Below, in pieces: positions 41,682-64,000 of a DNA stretch of 64,000 bases (its first letter is position 1; every line of letters starts with the position of its first letter). Location: NCBI GenBank assembly GCA_010909165.1, contig VJWM01000118.1, forward strand, positions 682,001-746,000. The letters are read 5' to 3'. The stretch comes from Anthoceros angustus. Lineage: Eukaryota; Plantae; Anthocerotophyta. The notes under the pieces were generated by a model that worked only from the letters and a program-made list of their open reading frames with translations, ran no database searches and was not told where the DNA came from. Both the position numbers and the translations under genes were made by a program.

Positions 41682-44600
41682 ATGGATTATCTCTCCCATG
41701 TCGTGAAGATGGATCACAGGCGAACTCCCTTGAAGCATTTGCCCATGAATTCGGCTATTTCGACATCCCCAATGAAGTCTGAAGAGAGGCTGTACATGGA
41801 CGCCTCCCTTTGGATTGAGGATAGAACGGGGGTGGATATTCTTCCTGATTCACGTCATTTTGCAGAGGTGGGTTGTGAATGTATGCAACCAGTGTCAAGG
41901 CTATGCCGTGTCCTCGTGTGATATACTCCCGGAGATTAGTCTTGCTTTTATGGTGCTCATTATCATTCTGTACTACCCTTCTGTGCAAGAAACCTCAATC
42001 CAATAACCTCATCGCACTGCAGGTCCTCCAGGATGGAGAACTTTTGCTTAAGATAGCAGAAAGTGTGGCACCTGATGTAGCAGCAGAGATGAAGGCTGTT
42101 CACACTAAAGAGAGCTGGTATGAAGGTTGGAACGAGGTTGGAATGGCAAAAGCAGTGGAGAATATCCATATATTTCTGAGCATTTGCCGAGCGGTTGGTG
42201 TCAGTGAGCAATACCATTTTAGTGCGTCGGATTTGATCAAGGTAAGGTTTTGAGTCTGGCTCGAACTTGCTCATCGAAGCCACGCTGACCAGGAGCAATT
42301 CAGTGCCAAGCTGGTTTCTGCTCTTTCTTTCTTTCTTTGCCATTCCCATCAAGCCCTGTTAACCCTGATTGGCACTGGTTGGAAATGCAGGGCCGTGAAA
42401 TTAAACGAGTGGTTGAATGCCTTATGCTTTTCCGAACGATTGTAACTCCGCAACCCTCTTATATGGAGACACCACAGGCTGTGCAGGAACTCGGTGCTGA
42501 ACAAGCCCAACCACCTGAATACAGTAGCCCGAAGACAGTCGTACCTGCCAGCAAGGCTGGCAACGATACTAGCTCTCAAGGCAACGCCCATGAAACTTAT
42601 GATTCCGTATCTGAAAAAAGCATTTGGTACAGTGCTCTTGCAGATGCATACAACAATGTCGTGGAAATGTCCCCATCCCCTGGTAAGCGGGAGATATTTT
42701 CAAAAAAGGAATTGCCTACAAGGAAATTGCAGTTCCCGTTCAGTTTGGGTTCATCTGCAGACACAAGTGACGGGTCCTATCAAGCTGAGATTGCAGAGAT
42801 GATTGAAAAGGTGGCGAACATTGGGGACCACAGTCCAGAAAGTGCAAAGTCACTTCTCCTTGCGCAGTCACCTAGTGTACTCCAGAAGCGAATCTGCACG
42901 ACAGACGATGTATTCATTGTTAAGAAGTTTGCCATGAGGCTTGCTGCCAAAGAGCGGGTAGTCAAGGTGTGTTTTGATCTGTCTCTTCTGGTGATAGGGC
43001 TTATGGCCAGAGATCTGTGTCAAAGATAAGTCTCATTGGTCTATGTCCTGAATCTGTCAGGAGCTAGTCGCAGAGCTGTCTACTGCTCTTCGAAGGGAGG
43101 AAGCATTGCAGACTAAGGTATTGATGCGTTTTCTTCATGCTTGTTGCCCTCTTACAATGATGTTCCATGGCCTGTTATATCATGTTCATGACTTCTCATT
43201 TCAGGTCACGCTTTTGGAGAGAGGCACAGCAGGGTCAGCTAGGGATCAAGGGCCAAATAAAGGTGATTTGGGTCTCGGCGAAAGTGCGGCTTTGGATTCT
43301 AGGGATGTAGACTTTCTCAGAATAGATCAGGTATGTAGTAGGTTCCGTACCTGAGTGTTGATACCTTTTGACCAGTTGCAACTAGTTCTGATTCTGAATT
43401 CTCTGGTCAGGGGTCGAAGCAGGAATCAAAGGAAATGTTGGACAATCTGAGAAAGGATTTGGAGACTTCTCAGGCTGAAAGTGCATCACTGAAAGAACGC
43501 CTATCCGCAGCTCAAGCCTTAACAGGAAAACTTGAACTGCATTATGACAGTGCACTTCGAGTAAGTGTGTGTGGATCAAAGCCCTTTATAGGCTGAGAAA
43601 CTCTCTCTCTGCTCCATTGTTCCTGCCTGAATCCCTTGCTGAGTTATTTTAAGGTTTGGGGTTGCAGGGACTGAAAGGAGACCTGGATAGGTTGAAAGAA
43701 GAGTTTCTGCAAGCTCAGGCTGCAAATGTCGAATTGCTCCTGCATACTGGTAGGAAACAAGATTATGCCCACAATTGTTATGAAGCTTTTCCCTGATGGA
43801 TTTCTCCTTTATGCCTTTCCTTCTGGATACTCAGGGTCCGATTTTAACTGGATAACCAAGGATTATATGAAACTGAAGTCAGAAAACAAGCATCTCCGAA
43901 ATGAGCTCCAGGATCTGAAAGGTTATTCTATTTGTATATACCCTATCATCATTACTTTGTTCATGCTTCTCCATTGCCCATTCTGCTGCATCTTGTATTG
44001 CCGATCCTGATTGCCTTTCTTTACATCCGTACATCAGGAAATATAAGAGTATTTTGCAGAGTACGTCCTATGCCTTCAGAAACTGAAAGCTCAGGTCAAG
44101 GCGTTTTCTGTCCTGGTGAGGAGGTTGTAATTGTAGAGAATCAGAAGAACTCATCCACGAACTTCGTCTATGATAAGGTGTACGGCCCTCCAGCTACACA
44201 GGGTATAAACCTCTGGCAGTCGTTTTTCTCCTTGGGTTGGGAGAGGACATTTGTAGGTTTGCATCTGTTGCAGATTTTTTGACGCTGATAGTAGGTATAG
44301 TCGCGTGTTTTCTGTTCTAAGCTGTTCCATGGATTGTTCTTGATGTTATTTTGATGAAATGGCAGAGCACGTATTCATGGATGTGCTACCCCTTGTAAGA
44401 TCAGTGATGGAAGGTTACAATGTCTGCATATTTGCGTACGGGCAGACTGGAAGTGGTAAAACTTACACGATGGTAAGCATAAAAGCTCCATTTCTCAGCT
44501 CAACATTCCATCTATGATTTTGTATGCTATTTTTTGGTTCAAACTGTTGTGTCATCAAGCTAGGACGTAATCAGACTTCCTTCTGATGGTTGGAAACAGA

Positions 44601-50584: not shown

Positions 50585-51223
50585 GTGCCCAGGAAGGGGG
50601 ACGGTCCGAAAATCGACTCGGAATCGGCTGAGGTTATCTTCGTCTCTGATTGGGAGGTCTCAAGCCTGTCGTAGAACTGTTGGCACCTAAGCTTTGGCTT
50701 TGTTGTGTTCTGTGTGAGTTGGTCCAGGCAGAAGCAGCATTACGGAGTGAGCGTGACGCTCTAGCGGATGAGGCCATCGAGTGTGAGTGCCTCGACGGGT
50801 TGAAAACTGGTCCTTGTGGGGAGGAGTTTAAGGAGGCCTTCCTTTGTTTCTTAAAGAGTGGCCATCCCGAGAAGGTCAGTGATCCTCTGCCCGGTTTACC
50901 TGGATCATCTCAGTGGCAGTTGATACGGATGGCAGCCTTGGTCTATTTGAAAAGCGTGGTGGTACTTCGATCTTCAGGGGACAGACTGCATAGAGCCCTA
51001 TTTTACAGCCCTGAAGACTTGCATAAATCAGAATGAGCAGGCCCTCCTGGATCTTGTACCTGAAGACGACCCAGCGAGGTATACAGGGGCCGCTTTACCA
51101 GCAGTTGACGCCTCGAGCGTCAGGCTTCCTAAGTTTTACAGTGATAAGAAATGGAAACAAGGGGATCCAGAGCCACTCAGCAAGGACGATGACGGGGACA
51201 CGGAGATCGGAGACGCAGACTAG
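50585..51223 (+). CDS. MIA40: MIA40/CHCHD4-like oxidoreductase, divergent; first exon not located
   Basis: AEAA...AIECECLDGLKTGPCGEEFKEAFLCFLKSGHPEK spliced to GTDCIEPYFTALKTCINQN resembles plant MIA40 (LDCPCIADL..G.CG..F.EAFLCFLKS..EEKGSDC). Confidence 0.78.
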
Positions 51224-51517: not shown

Positions 51518-54500
51518 TCACATGAGGGATGTGACATTGCATCGCAGACTCCCAGCGAGCTCTTCAAAGCTCTTTGATAGCTGCACTTCGTCTAAAGTCC
51601 GTTTGAAGGTGCCCTGCGCGGCCCTAGCCATGTTCTCCAGTAGGTCTGTGCGTTTGTCGTTACCAAACAGGATGGTGTGGAGTACCAGCTTTGGCGCCAG
51701 CTTCTTCATACCTTTTATGAGAGTGATAGGATCCCCAGTTCCAAAATTTCCACCATCACTAAGAAAGATAAGCACGGGAGACCTTGCGGACTTGTCCTTC
51801 TCAGCCGCCCTCAGCAGACCATCAGCTGGCTGTAGGCCGCTGCAATAATCTGTCCATCCACCTGGGTGAAAAGAGAGGAGCTTGTCAACTGCAAACCTTT
51901 TGATGGGCTGCCTCTGCACCACAGTTGCACCAACATTATTGAACAGGATGACCGAAACCAACTCAGGCTCCCTGGTTGTCAGCTTCCCTCGAGCTTTGAC
52001 GAAGCGAACAATTGCTTCATAGACGCATCCCAGTCTGTTGTTGTGCTTCTTAGCTATTTTGGAGAGAGTGGGTTGGATATCCTGCTCAGACATCGATGCT
52101 GACCTGTCTATGATGAAGATGATGTGGTTGGCAGTGTCCCTGACATGGCTACAGGAAAAGGAGTGGCCATCATCTGTTACATATCCAGTGGTGGGCAGAG
52201 CAGAGGATTCCGTGTTTGAAACAGGCTGATGCCACAACTTCTCCCTGCAGTAGCTTCTGGCCCTGTTGGAATCATGGTCGTCTGACCTGCAGAAATGGTT
52301 GCAGAGCTCGAATTCCACGCGATCCTCCTCTTGGCAGGGGTGCTTGAACCTCATGTGGTTCCAGTACGCACTGCATGTGAATTCATCCTTTGGCTCATCA
52401 AGGTTGGGGCCAAACTTCCTGGTTTCATGTCTTACACCCTTGAGGGTGGTCTCTCCACAGACCCCAGACGCTTCATGCCCTGGACACCTCACAAGATGAA
52501 TGTGGCCCCTGCCCTGTGCCTTGCAGTACATGCTGCAGATCTCAGCCATTCCAGACTCTCCCCATGCGTACCTGCGGTCCTGGATATCGATTGCCTCTGC
52601 CTCAGCCACAAAGCTAACACCACGCATGTTACCATGCACTGTGTCGTGCAAGCCTGCATGGCCCATCGCAAGGTGGCAAAAGTACCCACATGCTGGGCAT
52701 CGTTCGCTGCAGAAGTGCACAGCGTCCTCCCGTGTTGTGTGACGATGGGGCCCTTCGTGCCTGTCTGCTCCTGGAGGGATTGCAATGCAGCAACGCTCTC
52801 TCACACCATTCTGCTCGGTAACATCCTCGTACTCGAAAACTGACCTCTTCCCTGCGAAGGTCATGGGGTGCTTGGCCAGCTCCGTCACGATCCGACATGT
52901 CCCAGGAGCCTCACATGCAGCATGGCAGCTGTGCTCGTACCCACAGATGTGCCTGCTATCAGGATGCAACTCATGGAAGTGATCCAAGGCGCCACACTTC
53001 CTGTTGCACCCTGGAAATGTACAGCTAAGAGGGCACGCCTGCTCACTGCATGCGTGCCTCTCATGGTGCCCAAGTTCCAGACGTAACGTACAGGAGTTTC
53101 TGCACGAGGACATAGAACATGTCTCCGCACACAAATGGTGGCTGGTGTTGCACTTGTGCTCTCCCGAATGATGCCGATCCAGAGCACAAAACCGGTTACA
53201 GTTGGAGGACTTGTCAGAAAACGTGCATTCCTGACCACAGGCATGATTCCGTTCCTTGCAGTCATGCGGACCATCGTGGCCATTCAAGTCACCACACTCA
53301 TTCGCCGAATGCTTGGTTGCTGGGTCTGCAGTACAGAAGGTGCAAGGACTGGCACAACCATGAGAGCTTTCCAAACAATCATGCCCATGCGGATGGCCTC
53401 TCTCAAGAGCACAAAGCAGAAAGCAAGTTTGGCACTTGCTGCTACACAGCGACAGTTTCTGTTTCAGCTCTGCCAGCATTGCAAGTGCTTGCGAGCGGAA
53501 GTTTTCAACCTCGCCATCACTCTGGAAGTCCACTGTATTGCAACGCACCCACTCCAACACCCTCCGTCGGCGTCTCTCTACTAAAGCAGCCAAGAAAGCT
53601 TCGAACTCGGCATGCCAGGTAGCATCATCCGCCCCCGTCCTCTGAACCACCTCCACGAATGTACCCTTCAAAGACCGCAGAATGCTTCCAATCACTTGAC
53701 TGTCCTGGGAGGGAAACAGCTGCAAACCTGTGTCCCACTCTCTGAAGCTGTACTTATCCAGCTCAAGAGCATCATCAGCAACGGGCTCCAAAGTGTCAAG
53801 ACTCACCAGCAAATTGTCATGCTCTCCTTGAAGCCTTCCAGAACTAACAGCTGTTTTCAAGTCCTTCCTGAGAGCATCAAGCCGCAGGGTGACTCTTTTA
53901 GTGGCAATTGGAGACCAGTCCTTAGCACTGATCTGGGCTATCATCAGCTTTAAATCAGTTGCCAGGTTGCTTCCGCCCGTATGAACTTCCTTCAACTCCT
54001 CCTCCACTGTCACCGCTAGTTCAACCACGCTCTTATGAAATTCTGGTAGCTGGAAAGGATGCATGGTAGCTATCACTATGTTGCCTCCGTACATCTTGCT
54101 GAGAAAATTCTCTTCTGACCTGCGGCACATCTGCATCATTTTCTTATGAAATTCGCGCCCCAGGGCTTCCACGTCTTCTGCATCCACATCCTTAATAGCC
54201 AGGTAGAAGAGCCCTTGGAACAACCGAGGATCCTGCTTAACCAAGCTGATGCCGTTTTGAAAACGTTGGAACACAGCATCTGTCTCTTTGTCCAGATGGA
54301 AATCCTGGCAGCCAGAAACAAAAACGAAGAGTGGTCATCTCAAATCAATTGTAAGCAAACCAGAGGGCTACCATTTCTCTACCAGAAAAAAGCAGCAAAC
54401 CAGAGGGCTAACCTTCTTGTTGAAGATTGTGATATTGCTCAATGCTGCATTGAGAAGGGACAAGAGCATATCTTCTTGCTCACTTCGCTCGAAGCTCCCC

Positions 54501-57500
54501 AAGCCTTCAAAATCCAGAAGCACGTACAAGCACTTGTCGGTAACTCGTACAGTCATCCAGACGCCGTCTGTGCAACGCCCACCCGCCACATCCAGCAAGG
54601 AACCGCTCAGGTGATTGAGCAGGTAGGATTTCCCACTGCTCTGTTTGCCCATGGATGAGATGACCTTGACAGTGCCGTGCCAGTGACCGAGCACAGCATC
54701 GTACAAGCCGAAGTGGATGCCGTTGGCTAGAGAGACTGCATCAGCGTACTCCAAGTGTGCTGGAAGCTGGAGTCCATTGCTGAGCGGACGCAGGCTGTTG
54801 TTCTCTGCTCGTGCTATCTGTATTGGCACTAAGCATATTAGCTCCCTGATCCATGCCCCAACACCTACTGGAGAACTGGGCTTCCTCCCAAGACGCTTCC
54901 CATAGGATCGGCACCCAGCTAGGGTGTCTGACCTCAGGTGTATGTGCAGATTGGACAGATCTTTGCCTCTCTCTCGTCCCACCCTCTTCAGCGAACTCTC
55001 AACATAGCGAACGTACTGCTTCCCGAGTTCCTTGCTTGGGTCTGACAGTGATCTTCCTCCTAGCACGATGTATACGTAGATGTTTCTCATCTTGTTTACC
55101 AGAGGTGGACTTGTGGAGAACTTTTCGAAGATCATGGAAATGTAGTCCAGAGCAGGGCAAGTCATGGATACAAGGCCTGGCTGCCTGGCTTTCCCTCCCA
55201 TTCCTCTCTTCCCGTGCCTAGCCTCCTGCAGCTGGGAGCCTTGTGGAAGGCTGTCTATCACTTTGGAGCAAATGCCTCTGGAGGGGTTTGATGTGTCCAG
55301 AAGGAGAAGGTGCATCTGGGACTCAAACTTGATGACTGCAGCCTCCAGACTAGCAGGGTCTTCCACCGGAAAGTCTACCTGGACAGTTTTCAAATGGACA
55401 ATTGCGTCCTCCAGACTGAATATCTGCAGCTCGAGAAAACCATGAAGCCTGCCATCCTGCTTGTGCACAAGCTCATCAGTTACCTGCCCTCCAGGCTCAT
55501 TTGCTCCAGAAGCACCGGATGAAGGCGACTGAGCCGAGCTTCCTCCTGCTGTGTAAATCGTGATGAGGCAGGACCCATCACTGGAAACACACGCCTTGAT
55601 TGGGAGGCCTGGAAGAGACGCAGTTCTTGGTTTGATCATGCCAGACTGGCTTATCTCAAATACTCGGACTCTGCAATCAGCGTCGATAAGAAGCAGCTCC
55701 TTCTTCCCTGGAATGAAGAGGATGGCAGTTAACTCTTTACTGCCGGAATAATCGAGCAGAGGCAAGTTGATATCGCACAATTCGATGCGACGTGACAGCT
55801 CATCGTAGCGATAGATTCCGACTTTGCTCAATAACCGATCATACAGAGCCATGTACTTGGAGACCTCGTCGAAGGCGAACAGATCAAACCGTTTGAAGGT
55901 TCGGATGGGTTTGGCATTTGACAGGTTGGAACCCACTTTGGGACACAGGTACACCCTCAGCGATGTGTTCTCAACATCGTGCACGAAGATGAACAACTCT
56001 CCAGACCTTAAAGCAATGACTCGGCACAGCCTGTCTGAGATCAAGTCCAGGTCCATCAGCTTGAGGTACGAAGATGACTGTGGAACGATGACGTGGGCTG
56101 GATCCCGAACCGATTCATCCACATCCTGCTTTGTTGGTGCAAGCTCGGCTAAGCTCCATGTGACTATTGCTGGCTCTGTCACTTCTTCGGAAAACTGGAG
56201 TCCAACCCTTTCCTCCAGCTCCACGTCCTCGAACCTCGTGTTGCCTCTGTTGGTGTTGGAGAGCTGCCCTTCCGTCTTCCTGGTGGAGAGAAGGGAACAC
56301 CTGGAAATGGACAAGCTGGACAGCCCATGCATGTTCTCGGTGGCTTGACTCCTATGTCCCTTCAGGAACTCGGACTCTTCGGATATGAATGACTGCTCAA
56401 GCAACCTGCTATGGCCTTCCAGTTGAAGACGTCTCTGGTCCCTCAGCAATGTCATCACCTTCCTCTTTACCAGCCTTTCCAGCTTGGAAGAAAGATTGTT
56501 ACAGTCCTCTCGATAAACAGCCCTGCAAGCTTCTATCACTTCAGTGACATACGTAGCGCCAGGCAGTTGAAGTGACAAGTACTCCAAGGTCGACTTCCCA
56601 AGCATCTCGCCAACCTTCTGGTTTGAAAACTGGGAGCGAAAATAAGTGGAGGGGGAGGAAGACATTACCGCTTCCTTGACTGAGGTCAGTGTAGCTTGAC
56701 TAACGTCAGCTCCATAGTCCTCAGGGCATTCACATACGCAGCTCAGCCCATCTGCCCTGAAACGCTGAGGCATAACACTTTCTTTCCCATACATGTCCAT
56801 CCACCTCAACATCCCTTCTGCTCCCTGGTCCATCACCTTAACTTGCACTGTGTTAGGCAATTTGAGCAAAGGAAAATCACCCTCGCCCAGAAACACCACC
56901 CTTTCAATGCTCGCGGATGCTATAATGGGTCCTTCAGCACATTCACCTTCATTTGGGAGCAATTGCAGCTTGCAAAAATGTTCATCAGGACCATCTTGCT
57001 TCAACCTTGCTACAAACTCATGAGGGAACAATATAGGTCCCGCCCACTTTGAAGTGACGTTCTTCACACTCTCAACAACAGCTGGACCCAGAATGAGCTC
57101 ATTTGAAGCAGTGTTGACTAGATGAAATTCCGACCCCACAAACAGAAAAGACATGTCATTGCTTGCCTCAGTGACACCCATCCAGATCCTGCAAAGCTCT
57201 CGTTCCACTTCTCGAAGCATGGACCTCTCAACTTCAGCTGGGCCCAATGGAGGGAGATCATCCATATCAGGATCTTCAATTGCCAAATGCATCTCCTCCC
57301 AGCTGAAACAAATACTCCGGTACAGTTTCAGCGCCCTCCTGAACAGACCCAGCAGAACCTTTTCCTCTTCTTTCAGACTGTCCTCCAGCTTGTAAAATTT
57401 CTGCTTGTGCTCGTCTCTCCTTCGATCGAAGCTGTCGATGAGCGACGTATAAGCTTTCCCCACTCCCTCTTTCAGCACACCACAGCGTAGCAGCGTCACA

Positions 57501-58408
57501 AAATCGTCATCGGGAAGCTCAGAAAAGCTAAGCTCGTGAAGTTGGGACCATTCTTGAACAAGCTGTGGGAGCTCCCGGACCTTCACTGTCTTCTCTTGTG
57601 TGATGCGCGCCGTCTTCGGAGGATGCACAGTGGGAAAGAGCAGGGCCAGGCGATGGAGACTTTCACACAGCATAAACCTGAGCTCGCCACTCACAAACAC
57701 ATCCTGATTCTGTACAAAGCATGTGAACCAGTGGGTACCTCTGGACAAGCGGGGCAAGCGGGGAAGATCAATTTGGAAACCGGTGCGCAACTGGAAATCA
57801 CTTCTCAGAGCTATAGGAGGAATGATGATCTTCTGGGTCCTCCTAGCATGCGCAGAAGCAGATTTGGAGTTGGAAGTGGTGTGCACAGTAGTAGTGGGTG
57901 CGATCACAGTGGACTCATCCGCATCATCCAGGCACACATAGACTGTGTCACACAAGTCCACAACATATCTGATAAAATTGCAGGATACATCCTTTCTGGA
58001 GGCTTCTCCCAACCTCTCCCCAGGATGCCAGTAGAAAATGTACAAGACATCTTCAGACAAGACGCCGTAAATCCCAGACTCCAGCTGAATCCTCGGAGAA
58101 ACTAGCTTCAGACCCACAAGAAGATTCATAACCACGTTCTTGCTTCCATAGAGCCCAAGAACATGTACCTTGCTCCTATCTAGAAAGTCGAAATCTAAAA
58201 CAATCTTTCCATGTCTCCAATTTGCTGAGCCCGCAGCCGCCTCATTGCATAGACTGATCACGTTCTCTCTCACAACCATCACCTTGTCCACAATTGTCAA
58301 GTCCAGCTGATCAGGTTGCAAATGTACCAACTTGTGAACTCCTGGCTCCTTCTTCCCACCCACAATCACCCGGTCCCCATTGCTTGCCAGGGGACCCGGT
58401 GCATCCAT
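51518..58408 (-). CDS. Giant (~2260 aa) GBP/VLIG-type GTPase with Cys/His-rich array and C-terminal VWA domain (paralogue A); 2 exons, 58408-54413 and 54304-51518
   Basis: G1 GKQSSGKS (54626-54649), G2 GRCTDG, G3 DFEG, G4-like IKDV. A phase-0 GT-AG intron (54305-54412) joins NKK to DFH. About 44 Cys in imperfect repeats. VWA MIDAS DRSAS (52094-52108) with later T and LSDG. Confidence 0.9.
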
Positions 58409-59130
58409 CCTGCTCTCGGATGCTAGAAGCTATGGTTACGGCCTGGTTCCCAATGGGTTGGTGCTCTGCATAAATCTATCATGTACGTCAAGGGTACACC
58501 ATAGAAGCACGAATTCTTCAAACAAGTCCGGATCCGGGTCCGAAGGGGATTCGTGTGTCAACAGGCCTAGGCCAGTTCAACACAGCCCTGAACCACCCTT
58601 GGAGAAGCTGTCAGCCCAGAGGAATAATCTCCATAACATGACTCTGGCCTGACTGTAAAAAGTTTCCGCGTGGCTGGAAGCCTTCCGTTCGAAGGCAGCA
58701 TCTGAGCCCATCCTGTCAGCGTGAAAAGGTCAACAACCTCGCAAGCAGTGCGTGGACTATCAATGTTCTTCAACATGGGAGCTCGGATATGCTTAGAAGA
58801 TGCTGCTCTCCTTAGCACTGCAATCAGCCGTCATCCACAAGCCTTCCACGGTCCCAAACTGCAGAACTTCAAACTGTGTCAACCCGTTCCTTCGCTTTGA
58901 AGTGACCTTGGAAAGTTGCGTGGGGCCCAAGTTGCCCAACTGGTGCTGCCAAACGCGCTTGAATGAGTCCAGAGCTGCAAACACATGAATGGGTCTGGAC
59001 GTGAGAGCAGCGTCAGTGCTCTCGGATGCAACCAGCATTCTCATCACAGGGGACAAGAGCCAAGGTTACTGAACTTACTGAGTGGCAATTCTAAGGAACT
59101 AGAGGAGATAGGAAGGAGGGAATTGTGGAG
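58409..59130. promoter_or_regulatory. Putative shared bidirectional promoter of the two giant GTPase genes
   Basis: 722 bp between divergent ATGs; contains a repeated TGCTCTCGGATGC motif. Function is inferred from geometry only. Confidence 0.45.
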
Positions 59131-62100
59131 ATGGGGGCTTTGGATCCCGGCGATGCATATCATGTGCTGGAGTTGTCCGAACAGTTTCTGCTTGGCAACG
59201 ACAGTGAGTCCGGATGTGAATCTGGGATCATTCCAAAGAGGAGATTGCTGAATCGGGAGGACTCATCTGAGCATCAAGAAGAAGAAGGGAAGGGGCAGAA
59301 GGAGGTACCTGCGCTGCATAAGCTGATACATCTCAAGGCTGATCAGCTGGATTTGAGCTTTGTGGAGAAGGTGGTCGTCTCCCAGAGTGGCATCATTGAT
59401 TTGTGCAACCTGCTGTTGCCGGGATCAGCCCATTGTATGAAGGATGAGATACTCTTGGATGTCAAGTCCTTGAACATCAACTTGGAGCCGTTGCATGCTG
59501 TGGGCCTGTATGGGAGCAAAGAGGTCTTGGGGCTACTTCTCCAGAGGGTGGGGGTCATGCCATTGGGTCAAGAGTGTCTGGATAGCATGGAGGCAGGGAT
59601 CTATGGAATTCTCTCACACGACTTGATTTATCTCGTCTACTGCCATCCTGGAGGGCGTATGGCAGAGGCCTCCAGAAAGGACGTCTCTTGCAACTTCATT
59701 CGCTACCTAATGGATTTGTGTGGAACCGTTTATGTGTGCTTAGATGCAGAGGATGTGAAGCCCTTCTTGGTGGCCGCAACCACTGGCTCCAGACTTGGTA
59801 GATCCAGAGTGGTAAATCGAACCCAGAGGCTTCAAATCTCTCAGCCCAACACCTCCGAGAATGACTTCGAGCTGCAAAGTGGGTTCCATGTGTTTCCACC
59901 CGGCCTATCGGCTGACATAGCTCCAAGTTCCGTGACGTCTTCCGCCGTTTCTGCATTTGATCTCACGTCCAGGTTCTCCGAAGGTCTGCATCGTTGTACT
60001 GTCCTCACCCCAGTTGTTTGCCCGCCCAGCAAAAGGTATCTAGAACATGAAAAGAATCTTGAGCAGCAGGAGCTACCAGCAATTGTGCAAGACTGGTCTG
60101 CGGCTTACAACCTTGATCTGGAGAAGCTTCCTGATAAGGATCTGTTGCTGCTTCTTCAGTGTGGAAAACTGCAAGCCCACCAAGCATACTTGTCACTGCG
60201 TCGTTCGTTTGAGCTCGGGATAGAGGACAACAAGAACAAGTTCTACGGCCTGGAGGAAACTCTGCGACAGGACCTTAAAAGTCTGCAGTTCATTTTCCAA
60301 GATATTCTCAAGGCTTACCGCAAACTAGTGTACAGATCAGAAGAAGCAGTGTTGGGAAGCAATGCAGATACTCTGAAGGCGAACCGGACTGATGCATCTT
60401 CAAACCAATCTGCTGAGATGATTTACCTGGAGAGGAAGCTCTGCGAGTTCTGGACTGGCAATGAGACCGCTCCGGCTAGTCCACACAGTGCACCATCCCT
60501 GTTGTTTGTTGGTTCCGAGTTCTATTTGGTTGGGACAGACAACAAAGTGATCCCCCTTTCAAGAGACCTTGGGTTCATGTTTGTGGTACAGAGCGTTAGG
60601 CTGTCAGAATCAGCGGCTGGGCCACTCCAACTTCAGCAAGAACTTGTTGCAAGGTCGGTTTCCAAAGACGGCTCTTCGGCTTCGTTTTCTTTCACCGTTC
60701 ACTCTCTTGAGGGTGACTGCCCGAAAGGGCCTATCGTGACTTCCCAGCGGGTCCAAGTCTCTGGTAGGTTTGCATCACCAGCTCACAGGAACGAACAAGA
60801 ATTTTCTTGTACTGTGCAGATCAAATTGAAGGAGCCTTCGTCTGCGGGCATGCTGACCTGGATGCAGTCGTATGATAGAGGGTCCATAGGTTGCCAGGGA
60901 ACAGGCACCCTGCCAAGTGCTGGCACACGATCTGTCTCAGAATATCAAGATGTCTGTAGGAGCCATTCTGCAAAGGTTGAAAGCATGATAAAACGGGAGC
61001 TATGGCCTCTGGTGAGAGAATCCAGACGCTTTGAGATAAATTCGCAGGGAAGCTTGCTCAAGCAATTATTCCAGCAGGAGGAGTCTGTCTTTATGAATAA
61101 CCTTAGGGGACAGCTTAGCAATGCAAGGCCGGATCATCCCAGTCTGTCAATCACCGGATGTCACCTTGTCTCCAGCAATGAGACGAGGTCGTCGTCAGCA
61201 AAGGCGCCTCAAGATGCTGATGACAAACTCGTAGTACGATATGTCTCTGAAGAAATAGAGCAGGCACGCATTAGGTGGAAGGTTGCTGAGCTTGCACCCA
61301 TGAAGACAGATGTGGAGAGAGCAATCACGGACAGAACTCATGTCATTGTCCCTCGCTGTTCAGATGCTCACACGTTGATTGAACTGGACCATAACGTGGA
61401 AAGGCTGACGAAGGTGGTGGCCATCAGGTCTGGAGAGGTGCTGGTGTTTGTGGAAAATGCCAAAGATGTATCCACAAGCGTGTACCTTTGCCCAAAACTT
61501 GGAACAGATGTGACATGCGCAAGTCCACTGAAGGTGTTTCCTAGGCTCTTTCACCTCATTGCTGTCGATGAAACTTCCAAGTTTGTGGCGCTGTATGCAC
61601 GAGAATTCAGCAAGATTAGCATGTACAAGTTTGATGAGGCCTTTCGGAACATGGATAGAAGTAACACTGAGCTCCAGCTCTCGGATTACATTGGAAGTGA
61701 CTTGACTTCCATGATGTTCATCCCTGGGAAGAGGGAAATGGTGCTCATAGACAGCGAAAGTCGAGTAAGCATCTTCCAGATAAGCCAGGGTATGATCAAG
61801 CCTCGAAGTGTTGTGTTGCCTGGACCTCCAGCAAAGGCCCTTGTTACGACTGATGGATCCTGTCTTCTAGCTCTGTATCATGATGGACGGGACATTGATG
61901 AAGATGCCCAGATTCGTCCTGTTGCGGATTCTTCGGCTAGCCTTCTGGAAATACATGTGTATGTGCTGGATGACGCACTGACATACATGAAAACCGTTCA
62001 GGTGGACTCCAAAGAGCTATGTGACAGCAAGAGAATGGAGTCCAGCATTGTGAGCTTCGAGTCACAAATGCACCTCCTGGCTCTCAATGCTGGCAATGCT

Positions 62101-64000
62101 GAGGAGGGAATCCGGTCCAAAAGATTGGACATCACCACCAGTTCCGGGGGTTGCCAACTGAGGGAGGTAAGGAAGGCGAAAACGGAGCCAGGGGATGGAT
62201 CACAGAAAGCTACGACTTGTCCTGCCTTGGACTACATAGGTCAGGTCTTCGAGAAGTACGCAACCAGCCCACCTCTTCAGGAAACCAAGAAGGATCTTTC
62301 CATTCAGCTGGTTCTGGGAGCAGGAATCCAAGAGCAAGCCAAGCAGCCGTGCATAAACTACGTTGACAGTTCGCTGACAACCATCGAACGACACCGAGGC
62401 AAGGATTTCTCAGACCTTGACATCGACATCCGCGCCGACGCGTTTAATGACTGCTTTGATGACGAAGGCCAGCTTGAAGGAAGCAGAGACGATAGAAACC
62501 TCAGAGCCGTGGGAGATTTCACTCAGACCCTTGTATGCTTGATCCCGATACAGATAGCTCGTGCCGAGAAGAACACCTTGCGACCCTTGAGTGATGGCCT
62601 GCAGCTCCCGCCTAACATCGACTACACCGACGCTGTGTCTCTGGCCACTGTCATCCGGTTCGGGTTCTATGACGCAGTGCTAGCGCAGTGGCAGGGACCC
62701 ATCAAAGTCATCTCATCCATGGGAAAACAGAGCAGTGGAAAATCTTACCTTCTCAACCATCTGAGCGGGTCCTTGCTTGATGTGGCTGGAGGACGTTGCA
62801 CCGATGGTGTGTGGATGACCCTGAGGCCAACCCAGAATTGTATGTATGTGCTGCTAGACTTCGAGGGCCTAGGAAGCTTCGAAAGGAGTGAACAAGAAGA
62901 CATGCTGCTTTCCATCCTGAATGCTGCTGTGAGCAACATCACCATCTTCAACAAGAAGGTAACTAGGCCGCTGCATTTGGACAAATTACTGGAATCTCTG
63001 CTTGCATCTTGCTTGAATGGATCCCTGCAAAGGACGAAGGGGCTCCTGTGACAATCTGAAACTTTCTCATCTGCCTTGACGTTGTTCTTGAACCAGGACT
63101 TCCACCTTGATAAGGAGACAGAGGCCGTGTTTCAAAGATTTCAGAGTGGAGTACGCTTGGTGAAGCAGGACACTAAGCTCTTCAAAGGCATGTTCTACAT
63201 GGCTATCAAGGATGTGGACACGGATGATGTGGAAGATCTCAAGGTCGAGTTTGTTAAGAAAATCCGGCACATGTGCAGCAAGTCGGAGGAGAACTTCCTG
63301 GCCAAAATGTATGGAGGCCACGTCGAGATTGCTGCCATGCCTCCTTCCAGAAACAAGAGTTTCATGACAGCATCTGTGCAATCCAAGCAACTGTGGAGGA
63401 CTTGGTAGCAGTTCAGCACAACGGGGGAAATCTAGCAACCGACCTGAAGCTGGTGATGGCTCAGATCTGTGCCAAAGACTGGTCCCCTATTGACACAAAG
63501 CGAGCGGCTCTGAAGGCTGATCTGCTCCGCAAGCACTTCCGCACAGCCATCGCTCTTGGAAGACTGCAGGGGAAGGACGGAGACCCCCTGGTAGACTTCG
63601 ACAGGCAGGAGGCCATACCCGAGCTCCCGGTCCAGCTCCATGGCCAGAGCTTCGAAGTACCAGACACGGACCTGGAGCTCTCTCCTTACCAGGACAGCCA
63701 GGTGGTTGGCAACATACTTGAGATGATGAGGCACAAGTTTGAGCTTGTTTTCCCCAGGTCAGGAACCGATGACGAGGTTTGGCATTCCAACTGAGAAATT
63801 CTTGCTTGCTCTGGCAGACAGACGCCGCATCAGAGTGCTGGACTGGCTGGATCGCAACACATCAGAGTTCCAAAAGAATGCAGACGTGCAAACCCTGCGC
63901 ATGAAGGCTGTTGCAATGCTTGCAGAGCTGAAGCAAACCCTGTCTCTTTGCAGCTGCAAATGCCAGATCTGCTTCCTTCGCTGTGTTCTTGAAAAGTCTC
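59131..64000 (+). CDS. Paralogue B of the giant GTPase gene; exon 1 59131-62958, exon 2 from 63097; two apparent frameshifts; runs off the window end
   Basis: Collinear with A (EASRKDVSCNFIRY, SLLFVGSEF, LVCLIPIQIARAE, GKQSSGKSYLLNHLSGSLLDVAGGRCTDGVWM). Same NKK/DFH intron. Reaches the first Cys repeat (CSCKCQICFLRC) at the window edge. Confidence 0.85.

Follow-up and report, generated by a model that had tools for sequence, protein, structure and literature searches.

Do two large paralogous genes that lie head to head form a working pair, or are they simply the two products of an inverted duplication? The question is raised by a stretch of 64,000 nucleotides (nt) of Anthoceros angustus (assembly GCA_010909165.1, contig VJWM01000118.1, positions 682,001-746,000), hereafter the window, which we analyzed together with a list of its open reading frames (ORFs) and their translations. 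An earlier note, made from the sequence alone, had described at one end of the window two giant GBP/VLIG-type GTPase genes, here called A and B, and had proposed that they form a paired immune or conflict system. We find that the pairing is real, but it has the look of an ordinary inverted duplication: in all probability, A and B are old, lineage-specific inverted copies of a single gene from an ancient family of giant multidomain GTPases that spans the eukaryotes.

Gene structures and age of the duplication

The ORF listing of the window contains three long ORFs (54368..58408 and 51518..54274 on the minus strand, 59125..63051 on the plus strand), and their translations make up two divergent paralogues on opposite strands. 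Splice sites were set from homology plus GT-AG ends. Gene A (minus strand, 58408..51518) encodes a product of 2260 amino acids (aa) with one terminal stop that aligns end to end with homologues of 2100-2600 aa, and gene B (plus strand) begins with an ATG at 59131 and extends beyond the window end. The genes stand head to head with 722 nt from ATG to ATG, and both introns are phase 0, have GT-AG ends and fall at the same codon position, between IFNKK and DFHLDKE. These models agree with what had been noted before, namely head-to-head paralogues with 722 nt between their start codons and a common intron position, a first exon open for about 1300 codons in both genes (1332 in A and 1276 in B), and a common domain order, which is the same in A and B as far as the window reaches. 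No third copy of the family was present inside the 64-kb window.

Overall, A and B are 40.5% identical. When identity was calculated per 50 residues of A, it ranged from 20 to 66% up to residue 1250, rose to 90-92% at residues 1251-1350, and lay between 38 and 69% thereafter, so that the earlier description of a nearly identical GTPase core with diverged flanks (90-92% versus 20-69% elsewhere) was borne out. The proportion of synonymous differences between A and B was 0.59-0.83 in every region including the core, about 0.75 throughout. Because this amounts to saturation, the duplication is old, as had been proposed for the inversion. The nonsynonymous proportion in the core was only 0.06, and the combination of saturated synonymous sites with few nonsynonymous changes there points to purifying selection rather than gene conversion; conversion was considered as the source of the near-identical core and rejected, since the synonymous sites of the core are as saturated as those elsewhere. 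The earlier note had expected ratios of nonsynonymous to synonymous divergence (dN/dS) to reveal a purifying core and diversifying flanks. The first part of this expectation held. The second was not demonstrable from the A/B pair, because synonymous divergence (dS) per domain was saturated or infinite, which makes per-domain dN/dS uninformative on the flanks.

In a tree built from the G domain and the helical region that follows it, A and B group as sisters (support 99/96), with Ceratodon branching next to them (95/66), and the land-plant sequences all together make up a single clade (100/100). The terminal branches measure 0.41 for A and 0.23 for B. With A and B placed as sisters and Ceratodon next, the tree suggests that the pair stems from a lineage-specific duplication in what looks like a bryophyte lineage.

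We also compared the core with that of other family members. Over the 100 core residues, A shares 86-90% identity with homologues from Cryptomeria, Taxus, Ginkgo, Ceratodon and Selaginella, and 47-71% with members from amoebozoans, oomycetes, fungi and animals. Near-identity of the core (91%) had been noted for A and B, but the core is equally well kept in conifer, Ginkgo, moss and lycophyte homologues and so is no property of the pair. The conservation is a family-wide constraint and not a pair-specific signal.

Gene B is intact and expressed

In the window, the reading frame of B exon 2 shifts after 63342 and again after 63792. To these letters, over window positions 58001-64000, we compared the contigs of four public runs: an RNA-type run of the same organism (X1), a DNA-type run of the same sample (X2), DNA of a second, related species (X3), and RNA of a third species (X19). 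All four carried one additional C after 63342 and an additional TC after 63792. With these letters included, the frame of B stays open for 1578 codons, as far as the window reaches, and both corrected places match A residue for residue in the alignment. Apart from the C and the TC, the X1 contig differs from the window at not a single position. Given that the letters occur in all runs and that X1 is otherwise identical, the window most likely has two small assembly errors, at 63342-63343 and 63792-63793, that make an intact gene look frameshifted.

The remainder of B lies beyond the window. The X1 contig continues for another 2,099 nt after the window stops, which is long enough to hold the 620 or so codons that the comparison with A leads one to expect there. 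The predicted intron of B (138 nt, GT..AG) is spliced out in contigs of both X1 and X19, i.e. in two species, and gene B is therefore transcribed and spliced. Among the insertions and deletions (indels) listed between species, those in the B coding sequence were -3, +3, +3 and -3, all multiples of three, while those in the intergenic region were -9, -5, +1, -2 and -3, all located at 58492-58575; of these five, the lengths 9 and 3 are multiples of three, whereas 5, 1 and 2 are not. Another 27 between-species indels exist beyond those listed. Multiples of three within B and mixed sizes between the genes fit the proposed coding limits. Both copies are intact. The earlier note had raised the prospect that B is a true pseudogene, which the reads contradict, with the C and TC in four of four runs and an open corrected frame. 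The practical result is thus a correction: B is whole, and the window lacks three letters there.

In X2, the stretch at 59090-59163, which contains the start codon of B, had two to three times the depth of its neighbours and was split into several short contigs, and part of the contigs carried a one-letter deletion at 59133. This stretch may be a short sequence that is repeated elsewhere in the genome, or the site of a heterozygous indel.

The region between the two genes

The RNA contigs also reach into the region between the start codons. In X19, one contig represents the 5' coding part of A and extends upstream to about 58761, and a separate contig begins at about 58939 and continues into B, which leaves an untranscribed gap of at most about 180 nt in that species. 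Contigs of A and of B therefore occur together in the RNA library of one related species. The k-mer depths in this library were 38.7 versus 30.6-48.1 for the A and B contigs, contig depths being a poor measure of expression. X1 yielded a single spliced contig that runs from about 57930, within exon 1 of A, spans the entire intergenic region and continues into B. Its portion from 57930 to 59131 may come from divergent 5' ends that overlap and that an assembler blind to strand has joined, or else from a long leader of B. With RNA contigs entering the 722-nt region from both sides, it is reasonable to infer a shared bidirectional promoter for A and B.

The head-to-head arrangement in other lineages

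Five loci outside the genus were read for synteny, with the arrangement assessed within 10 kb; the three plant loci were read by annotation and by tblastn with A. The family member was a single copy with no divergent paralogue within 10 kb in Selaginella, in Ceratodon and in Riccia. Saprolegnia likewise had a single copy within 10 kb, and in Auriscalpium there was a tandem pair on the same strand. Conserved head-to-head synteny, which a co-regulated pair had been expected to show, was thus absent at each of the loci read.

Closer to home the arrangement appears to be kept. In X19, orthologous intergenic sequence is attached to each of the two genes, and no contig bridges the middle. Judging from these orthologous intergenic ends, which come from RNA contigs and not from bridging DNA, two related species at a divergence of about 5% have probably retained the pairing.

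Some of the loci deserve separate mention. In Riccia fluitans (L003, 10001-17860), the annotated genes of 1611 aa and 758 aa are two halves of one family member, and A aligns continuously across both. The two family members in Auriscalpium vulgare (L004, 10001-29117) are 2254 and 2171 aa long and lie 1.5 kb apart in same-strand tandem. Cryptomeria japonica has at least 12 paralogues with neighbouring locus tags on one record of 862,687,481 bases; one of its gene models (P0007) spans 44.7 kb, and its 3' end overlaps another model of 2260 aa. A Logan protein that is 50% identical to A exon 2 (P0040) was tested as an orthologue of B and rejected.

A large eukaryotic family of multidomain GTPases

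The family comprised 343 clusters at E<1e-30, many of them 2000-2600 aa long and aligned end to end. Its plant and algal members come from gymnosperms, ferns, a lycophyte, a moss, a liverwort and Mesostigma, and its other members from oomycetes, dinoflagellates, chytrid, glomeromycete and basidiomycete fungi, a sponge, an amphipod, an amoebozoan and a malawimonad. There was no flowering-plant homologue among the family matches, and a literature search for this GTPase family returned no paper. The family is large, ancient and eukaryote-wide and, as far as we found, unstudied.

Coordinates of the genes and of the domains of A are collected in Table 1.

Table 1. Genes, intergenic region and protein domains at the A/B locus, in window coordinates
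Feature	Coordinates	Strand	Description	Basis
Gene A exon 1	54413..58408	-	1332 codons: N-terminal alpha/beta domain, helical regions, beta-propeller, first half of G domain	ORF, translation, splice donor
Gene A intron	54305..54412	-	108 nt, GT-AG, phase 0	Inferred from homology to the RNA-confirmed intron of B and GT-AG ends
Gene A exon 2	51518..54304	-	Remaining G domain, helical region, Cys/His array, VWA domain, stop codon	Pfam, translation
Region between ATGs	58409..59130	.	722 nt, both 5' untranslated regions and presumed shared bidirectional promoter	
Gene B exon 1	59131..62958	+	1276 codons	ORF, translation, same-organism RNA contig with 0 differences
Gene B intron	62959..63096	+	138 nt, GT-AG, phase 0	Skipped in RNA contigs X1 and X19
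Gene B exon 2 (first 904 nt)	63097..64000	+	Continues off window; one letter is missing after 63342, two after 63792	
N-terminal alpha/beta domain (A 20-295)	57524..58351	-	Weak G-domain-fold resemblance, no canonical P-loop	AlphaFold2 models, Foldseek
Beta-propeller (A ~697-1052)	55253..56320	-	AlphaFold2 predicted local distance difference test (pLDDT) 80-92 over most; low-confidence loop 956-989	AlphaFold2 model, Foldseek
G domain (A ~1240-1420)	54041..54691	-	Split by the intron; P-loop GKQSSGKS, G3 DFEG	Pfam, family profile
Cys/His-rich array (~415 residues)	52205..53452	-	Presumably zinc-binding	Translation, conserved C and H columns
C-terminal VWA domain	51578..52123	-	DRSAS (DxSxS) motif	Pfam VWA_2, VWA

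In the G domain, A and B both have the motifs GKQSSGKS, RCTDG and DFEG, with G1 and G3 identical, and in an alignment of 15 family sequences the key residues of the P-loop (including GKS), the switch-I Thr and DFEG are invariant. An NKKD at the exon junction was considered as a canonical G4 motif, but it is not conserved in the family consensus and is not counted as one. Pfam models matched around the P-loop in A, B and intact homologues were URGCP_GTPase (the best), GBP and RHD3_GTPase, and a C-terminal VWA domain was matched in A and the homologues; in the intact homologues GBP and VWA_2 were the only models to reach their cut-offs. GBP just passed, with 22-26 bits versus a cut-off of 21.1 bits. 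URGCP_GTPase scored 31-44 bits in A, B and three intact homologues, below its cut-off of 55 bits, and RHD3_GTPase scored 24-30 bits, under its cut-off of 42.4 bits. When a profile of the G region was compared with solved structures, it found GBP5, GBP2 and GBP1 at E values of 7e-12 to 3.3e-9 and Sey1 at 1.2e-8. The GBP/VLIG-type G domain named in the earlier note was therefore recovered from its motifs, from the GBP model and from the GBP and Sey1 structures, and on these sequence comparisons we place it in the GBP/Sey1/VLIG branch of the dynamin superfamily.

The VWA domain named in the same note was also recovered, from the DxSxS motif of A and from homologues. In A, VWA_2 was borderline (26.9 bits versus a cut-off of 27 bits) and VWA reached 22.2 versus 23.8 bits; in homologues, VWA_2 scored 33-37 bits, above the cut-off. 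The DRSAS of A is followed by a conserved Thr and Asp. The VWA region of B lies beyond the window.

The remaining parts of the protein gave fewer matches. For the Cys/His array, Pfam had no match even at E values up to 10, and for the array and the N-terminal 1200 residues, sequence searches of Pfam, NCBIfam and PDB had no significant match. A search of the ESM Atlas with the N-terminal 1240 residues gave only sub-threshold leads (0.77), among them SMG8 and VLIG/URGCP clusters. An AlphaFold model of the N-terminal 1200 residues of A (mean pLDDT 74) has, in order, the alpha/beta domain at 20-295, helical and beta regions, a long helical stretch at 530-690, and the beta-propeller at about 697-1052, which matched WD40 and NHL propellers in Foldseek (E about 1e-6). 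A separate model of residues 1-420 had a pLDDT of 67. Foldseek matches of the N-terminal domain were weak (E 0.004 to 0.03) and all to G domains, i.e. those of GBP1, GBP5, Sey1, EngB, Der and a small GTPase, and the domain has a conserved GxxGxK-like stretch in place of a canonical P-loop. Residues 20-295 of A may thus be a degenerate second G-like domain, which we offer as a lead only.

How close is this family to known giant GTPases? VLIG-1/GVIN1 and URGCP resemble it in their giant size, in a G domain deep inside the protein and in URGCP_GTPase as the best Pfam match; databases label relatives of A and B "VLIG-type G domain-containing protein", and a QSSGKS-type P-loop is common to VLIG/URGCP and this family. 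However, the match covers only about 90 residues, from the P-loop to G3, at scores below the cut-off. URGCP, URGCP_N and GVIN1 accessory domains had no Pfam match in A, B and the three intact homologues, where the family instead has the propeller, the Cys/His array and the VWA domain, and the interferon induction of VLIG has no plant counterpart. With URGCP_GTPase below 55 bits and the accessory domains missing, we file the family, on present sequence similarity, as related to but separate from VLIG/URGCP. GBP1, GBP2 and GBP5 are the closest solved structures by sequence profile, and by analogy with them GTP-dependent dimerization would be expected, but only the N-terminal 90-115 residues of the G domain align, neither a GBP helical domain nor a CaaX box was seen in an analysis that was not aimed at them, and the A product is four times longer and has other domains. 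Likewise, RHD3, Sey1 and atlastin are linked to the family by the RHD3_GTPase match and by the Sey1 structure 5ca8 (E 1.2e-8 over 160 residues), but the former falls short of its cut-off and the rest of the architecture is unrelated.

A possible mechanism

The proteins of this family, 2000-2600 aa long, combine a G domain of the GBP/Sey1/VLIG type with a propeller, a zinc-type array and a VWA domain. Judging by analogy to the relatives GBP and Sey1, whose structures are solved, we think it somewhat more probable than otherwise that each protein would be a GTP-gated assembly machine. A and B would be read outward from a short shared promoter region. In each product, the G domain would dimerize upon GTP binding, the beta-propeller and the metal-site VWA domain would bind partners or targets, and the Cys/His array would act as a rigid, zinc-stabilized spacer. 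Because A and B differ mainly in their N-terminal, helical and propeller parts, we regard them as paralogues that have diverged and bind with different specificity, rather than as the parts of an obligate system of two. An A/B heterodimer formed through the G domains could exist; since the G-domain surface is conserved across land plants, however, sequence suggests that either protein could equally well pair with any copy of the family.

Whether the family acts in defence or conflict is a more tentative matter, and we regard it as possible but less likely than not. Copy-number variation, the lack of flowering-plant matches and the kinship of the G domain with immune GTPases make such a role plausible. 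If the family does act in cell-autonomous defence, it would connect GTPase immunity in plants with that in animals. To the interest of the family the pair contributes little of its own, beyond being a compact locus where two intact, expressed copies share a promoter region.

Alternative explanations

The alternative that fares best is that the family has a housekeeping function in membrane or organelle dynamics, like RHD3/Sey1 and atlastin, with A and B partly redundant and their adjacency a relic of duplication. It agrees with the presence of the family across most eukaryotic supergroups and with a land-plant clade that is consistent with vertical descent, with the single copies at the loci read in Selaginella, Ceratodon and Riccia, with strong purifying selection on the core, and with the matches of the P-loop region to the RHD3_GTPase model and to Sey1 structures. 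The lack of a flowering-plant homologue among the matches would be odd for an essential function, however; copy number varies widely between lineages, and the propeller and VWA domains point to protein binding. We consider a housekeeping role unlikely, though far from implausible.

We next weighed the proposal of an obligate defence module in which A and B would be co-regulated and would assemble into hetero-oligomers, much like the head-to-head sensor/helper NLR pairs; the diverged N-terminal and propeller parts would sense and the common GTPase core would execute. Such NLR pairs consist of distantly related NLRs, one partner of which carries an integrated domain. RGA4/RGA5 and RRS1/RPS4 have in common with A and B the divergent orientation, a short shared upstream region and multidomain NTPase products. 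A and B lack an NB-ARC domain, though. They are sister copies that agree in domain order as far as the window reaches, both P-loops are intact, no decoy domain is seen in either, and their pairing was not seen at the loci read outside close relatives. The analogy drawn in the earlier note therefore holds for the head-to-head orientation and fails for partner asymmetry and for distinct clades, as A and B are sister copies with neither an integrated domain nor a degenerate motif. Mouse IRG proteins offer another comparison. There, GMS regulators and GKS effectors are paralogous immune GTPases that regulate one another via G-domain contacts; A and B belong to a different family, and both have the canonical GKS P-loop, neither bearing a regulator-type signature.

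A defence module is nonetheless what one might suspect from start codons just 722 nt apart in a head-to-head layout, from two intact genes that both have contigs in a single RNA library from a related species, from an arrangement kept since an old duplication, from near-identical G domains that could pair, and from the expansion of the family in Cryptomeria, as is often seen in immune families. Against this, the identity of the core is family-wide and not specific to the pair, the proteins are sister paralogues of the same architecture with an intact P-loop and G3 in both, no integrated or degenerate partner is visible, and none of the loci read in Selaginella, Ceratodon, Riccia and Saprolegnia shows the pairing, with a same-strand tandem in Auriscalpium. 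We judge such a module improbable. The fuller version, in which A and B would be the halves of a non-NLR defence module co-transcribed from one bidirectional promoter, with diverged propeller and N-terminal surfaces that recognize different cues and GTP-driven heterodimerization of the near-identical G domains that triggers VWA-mediated assembly or cell death, we judge slightly less probable again. Were it true, non-flowering plants would have retained a counterpart of paired NLRs that is built on GTPases.

Least credible is the view that the two frame breaks mark B as a decaying pseudogene: by the letters of the window, translation from B exon 1 would end soon after the first break, but the missing C and TC are present in same-organism DNA and RNA and in two related species, the corrected frame is open and aligns with A residue for residue, the X1 RNA contig has no other difference, and the coding indels listed between species are all multiples of three.

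Several points weigh against the duplication that we favor. Just five loci outside the genus were inspected for pairing. The adjacency of A and B has been kept since a duplication old enough for dS to be saturated, which is compatible with selection for linkage or co-regulation, and the similar k-mer depths of A and B in X19 weakly hint at co-expression. The longer branch of A (0.41 versus 0.23) is a mild asymmetry between the copies. Lastly, the GTP-gated mechanism rests on analogy, with no paper found on any member of the family.

Neighbouring genes

Around the 3' end of A, the short ORFs downstream were judged by eye, without a search, and showed no obvious further partner gene. By eye, an ORF at 50650-51036 on the plus strand, convergent with the 3' end of A, has a CHCH/Mia40-like Cys motif, and another at 43932-44282 on the plus strand has a kinesin-motor-like start. 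Both of these neighbours look like ordinary housekeeping genes.

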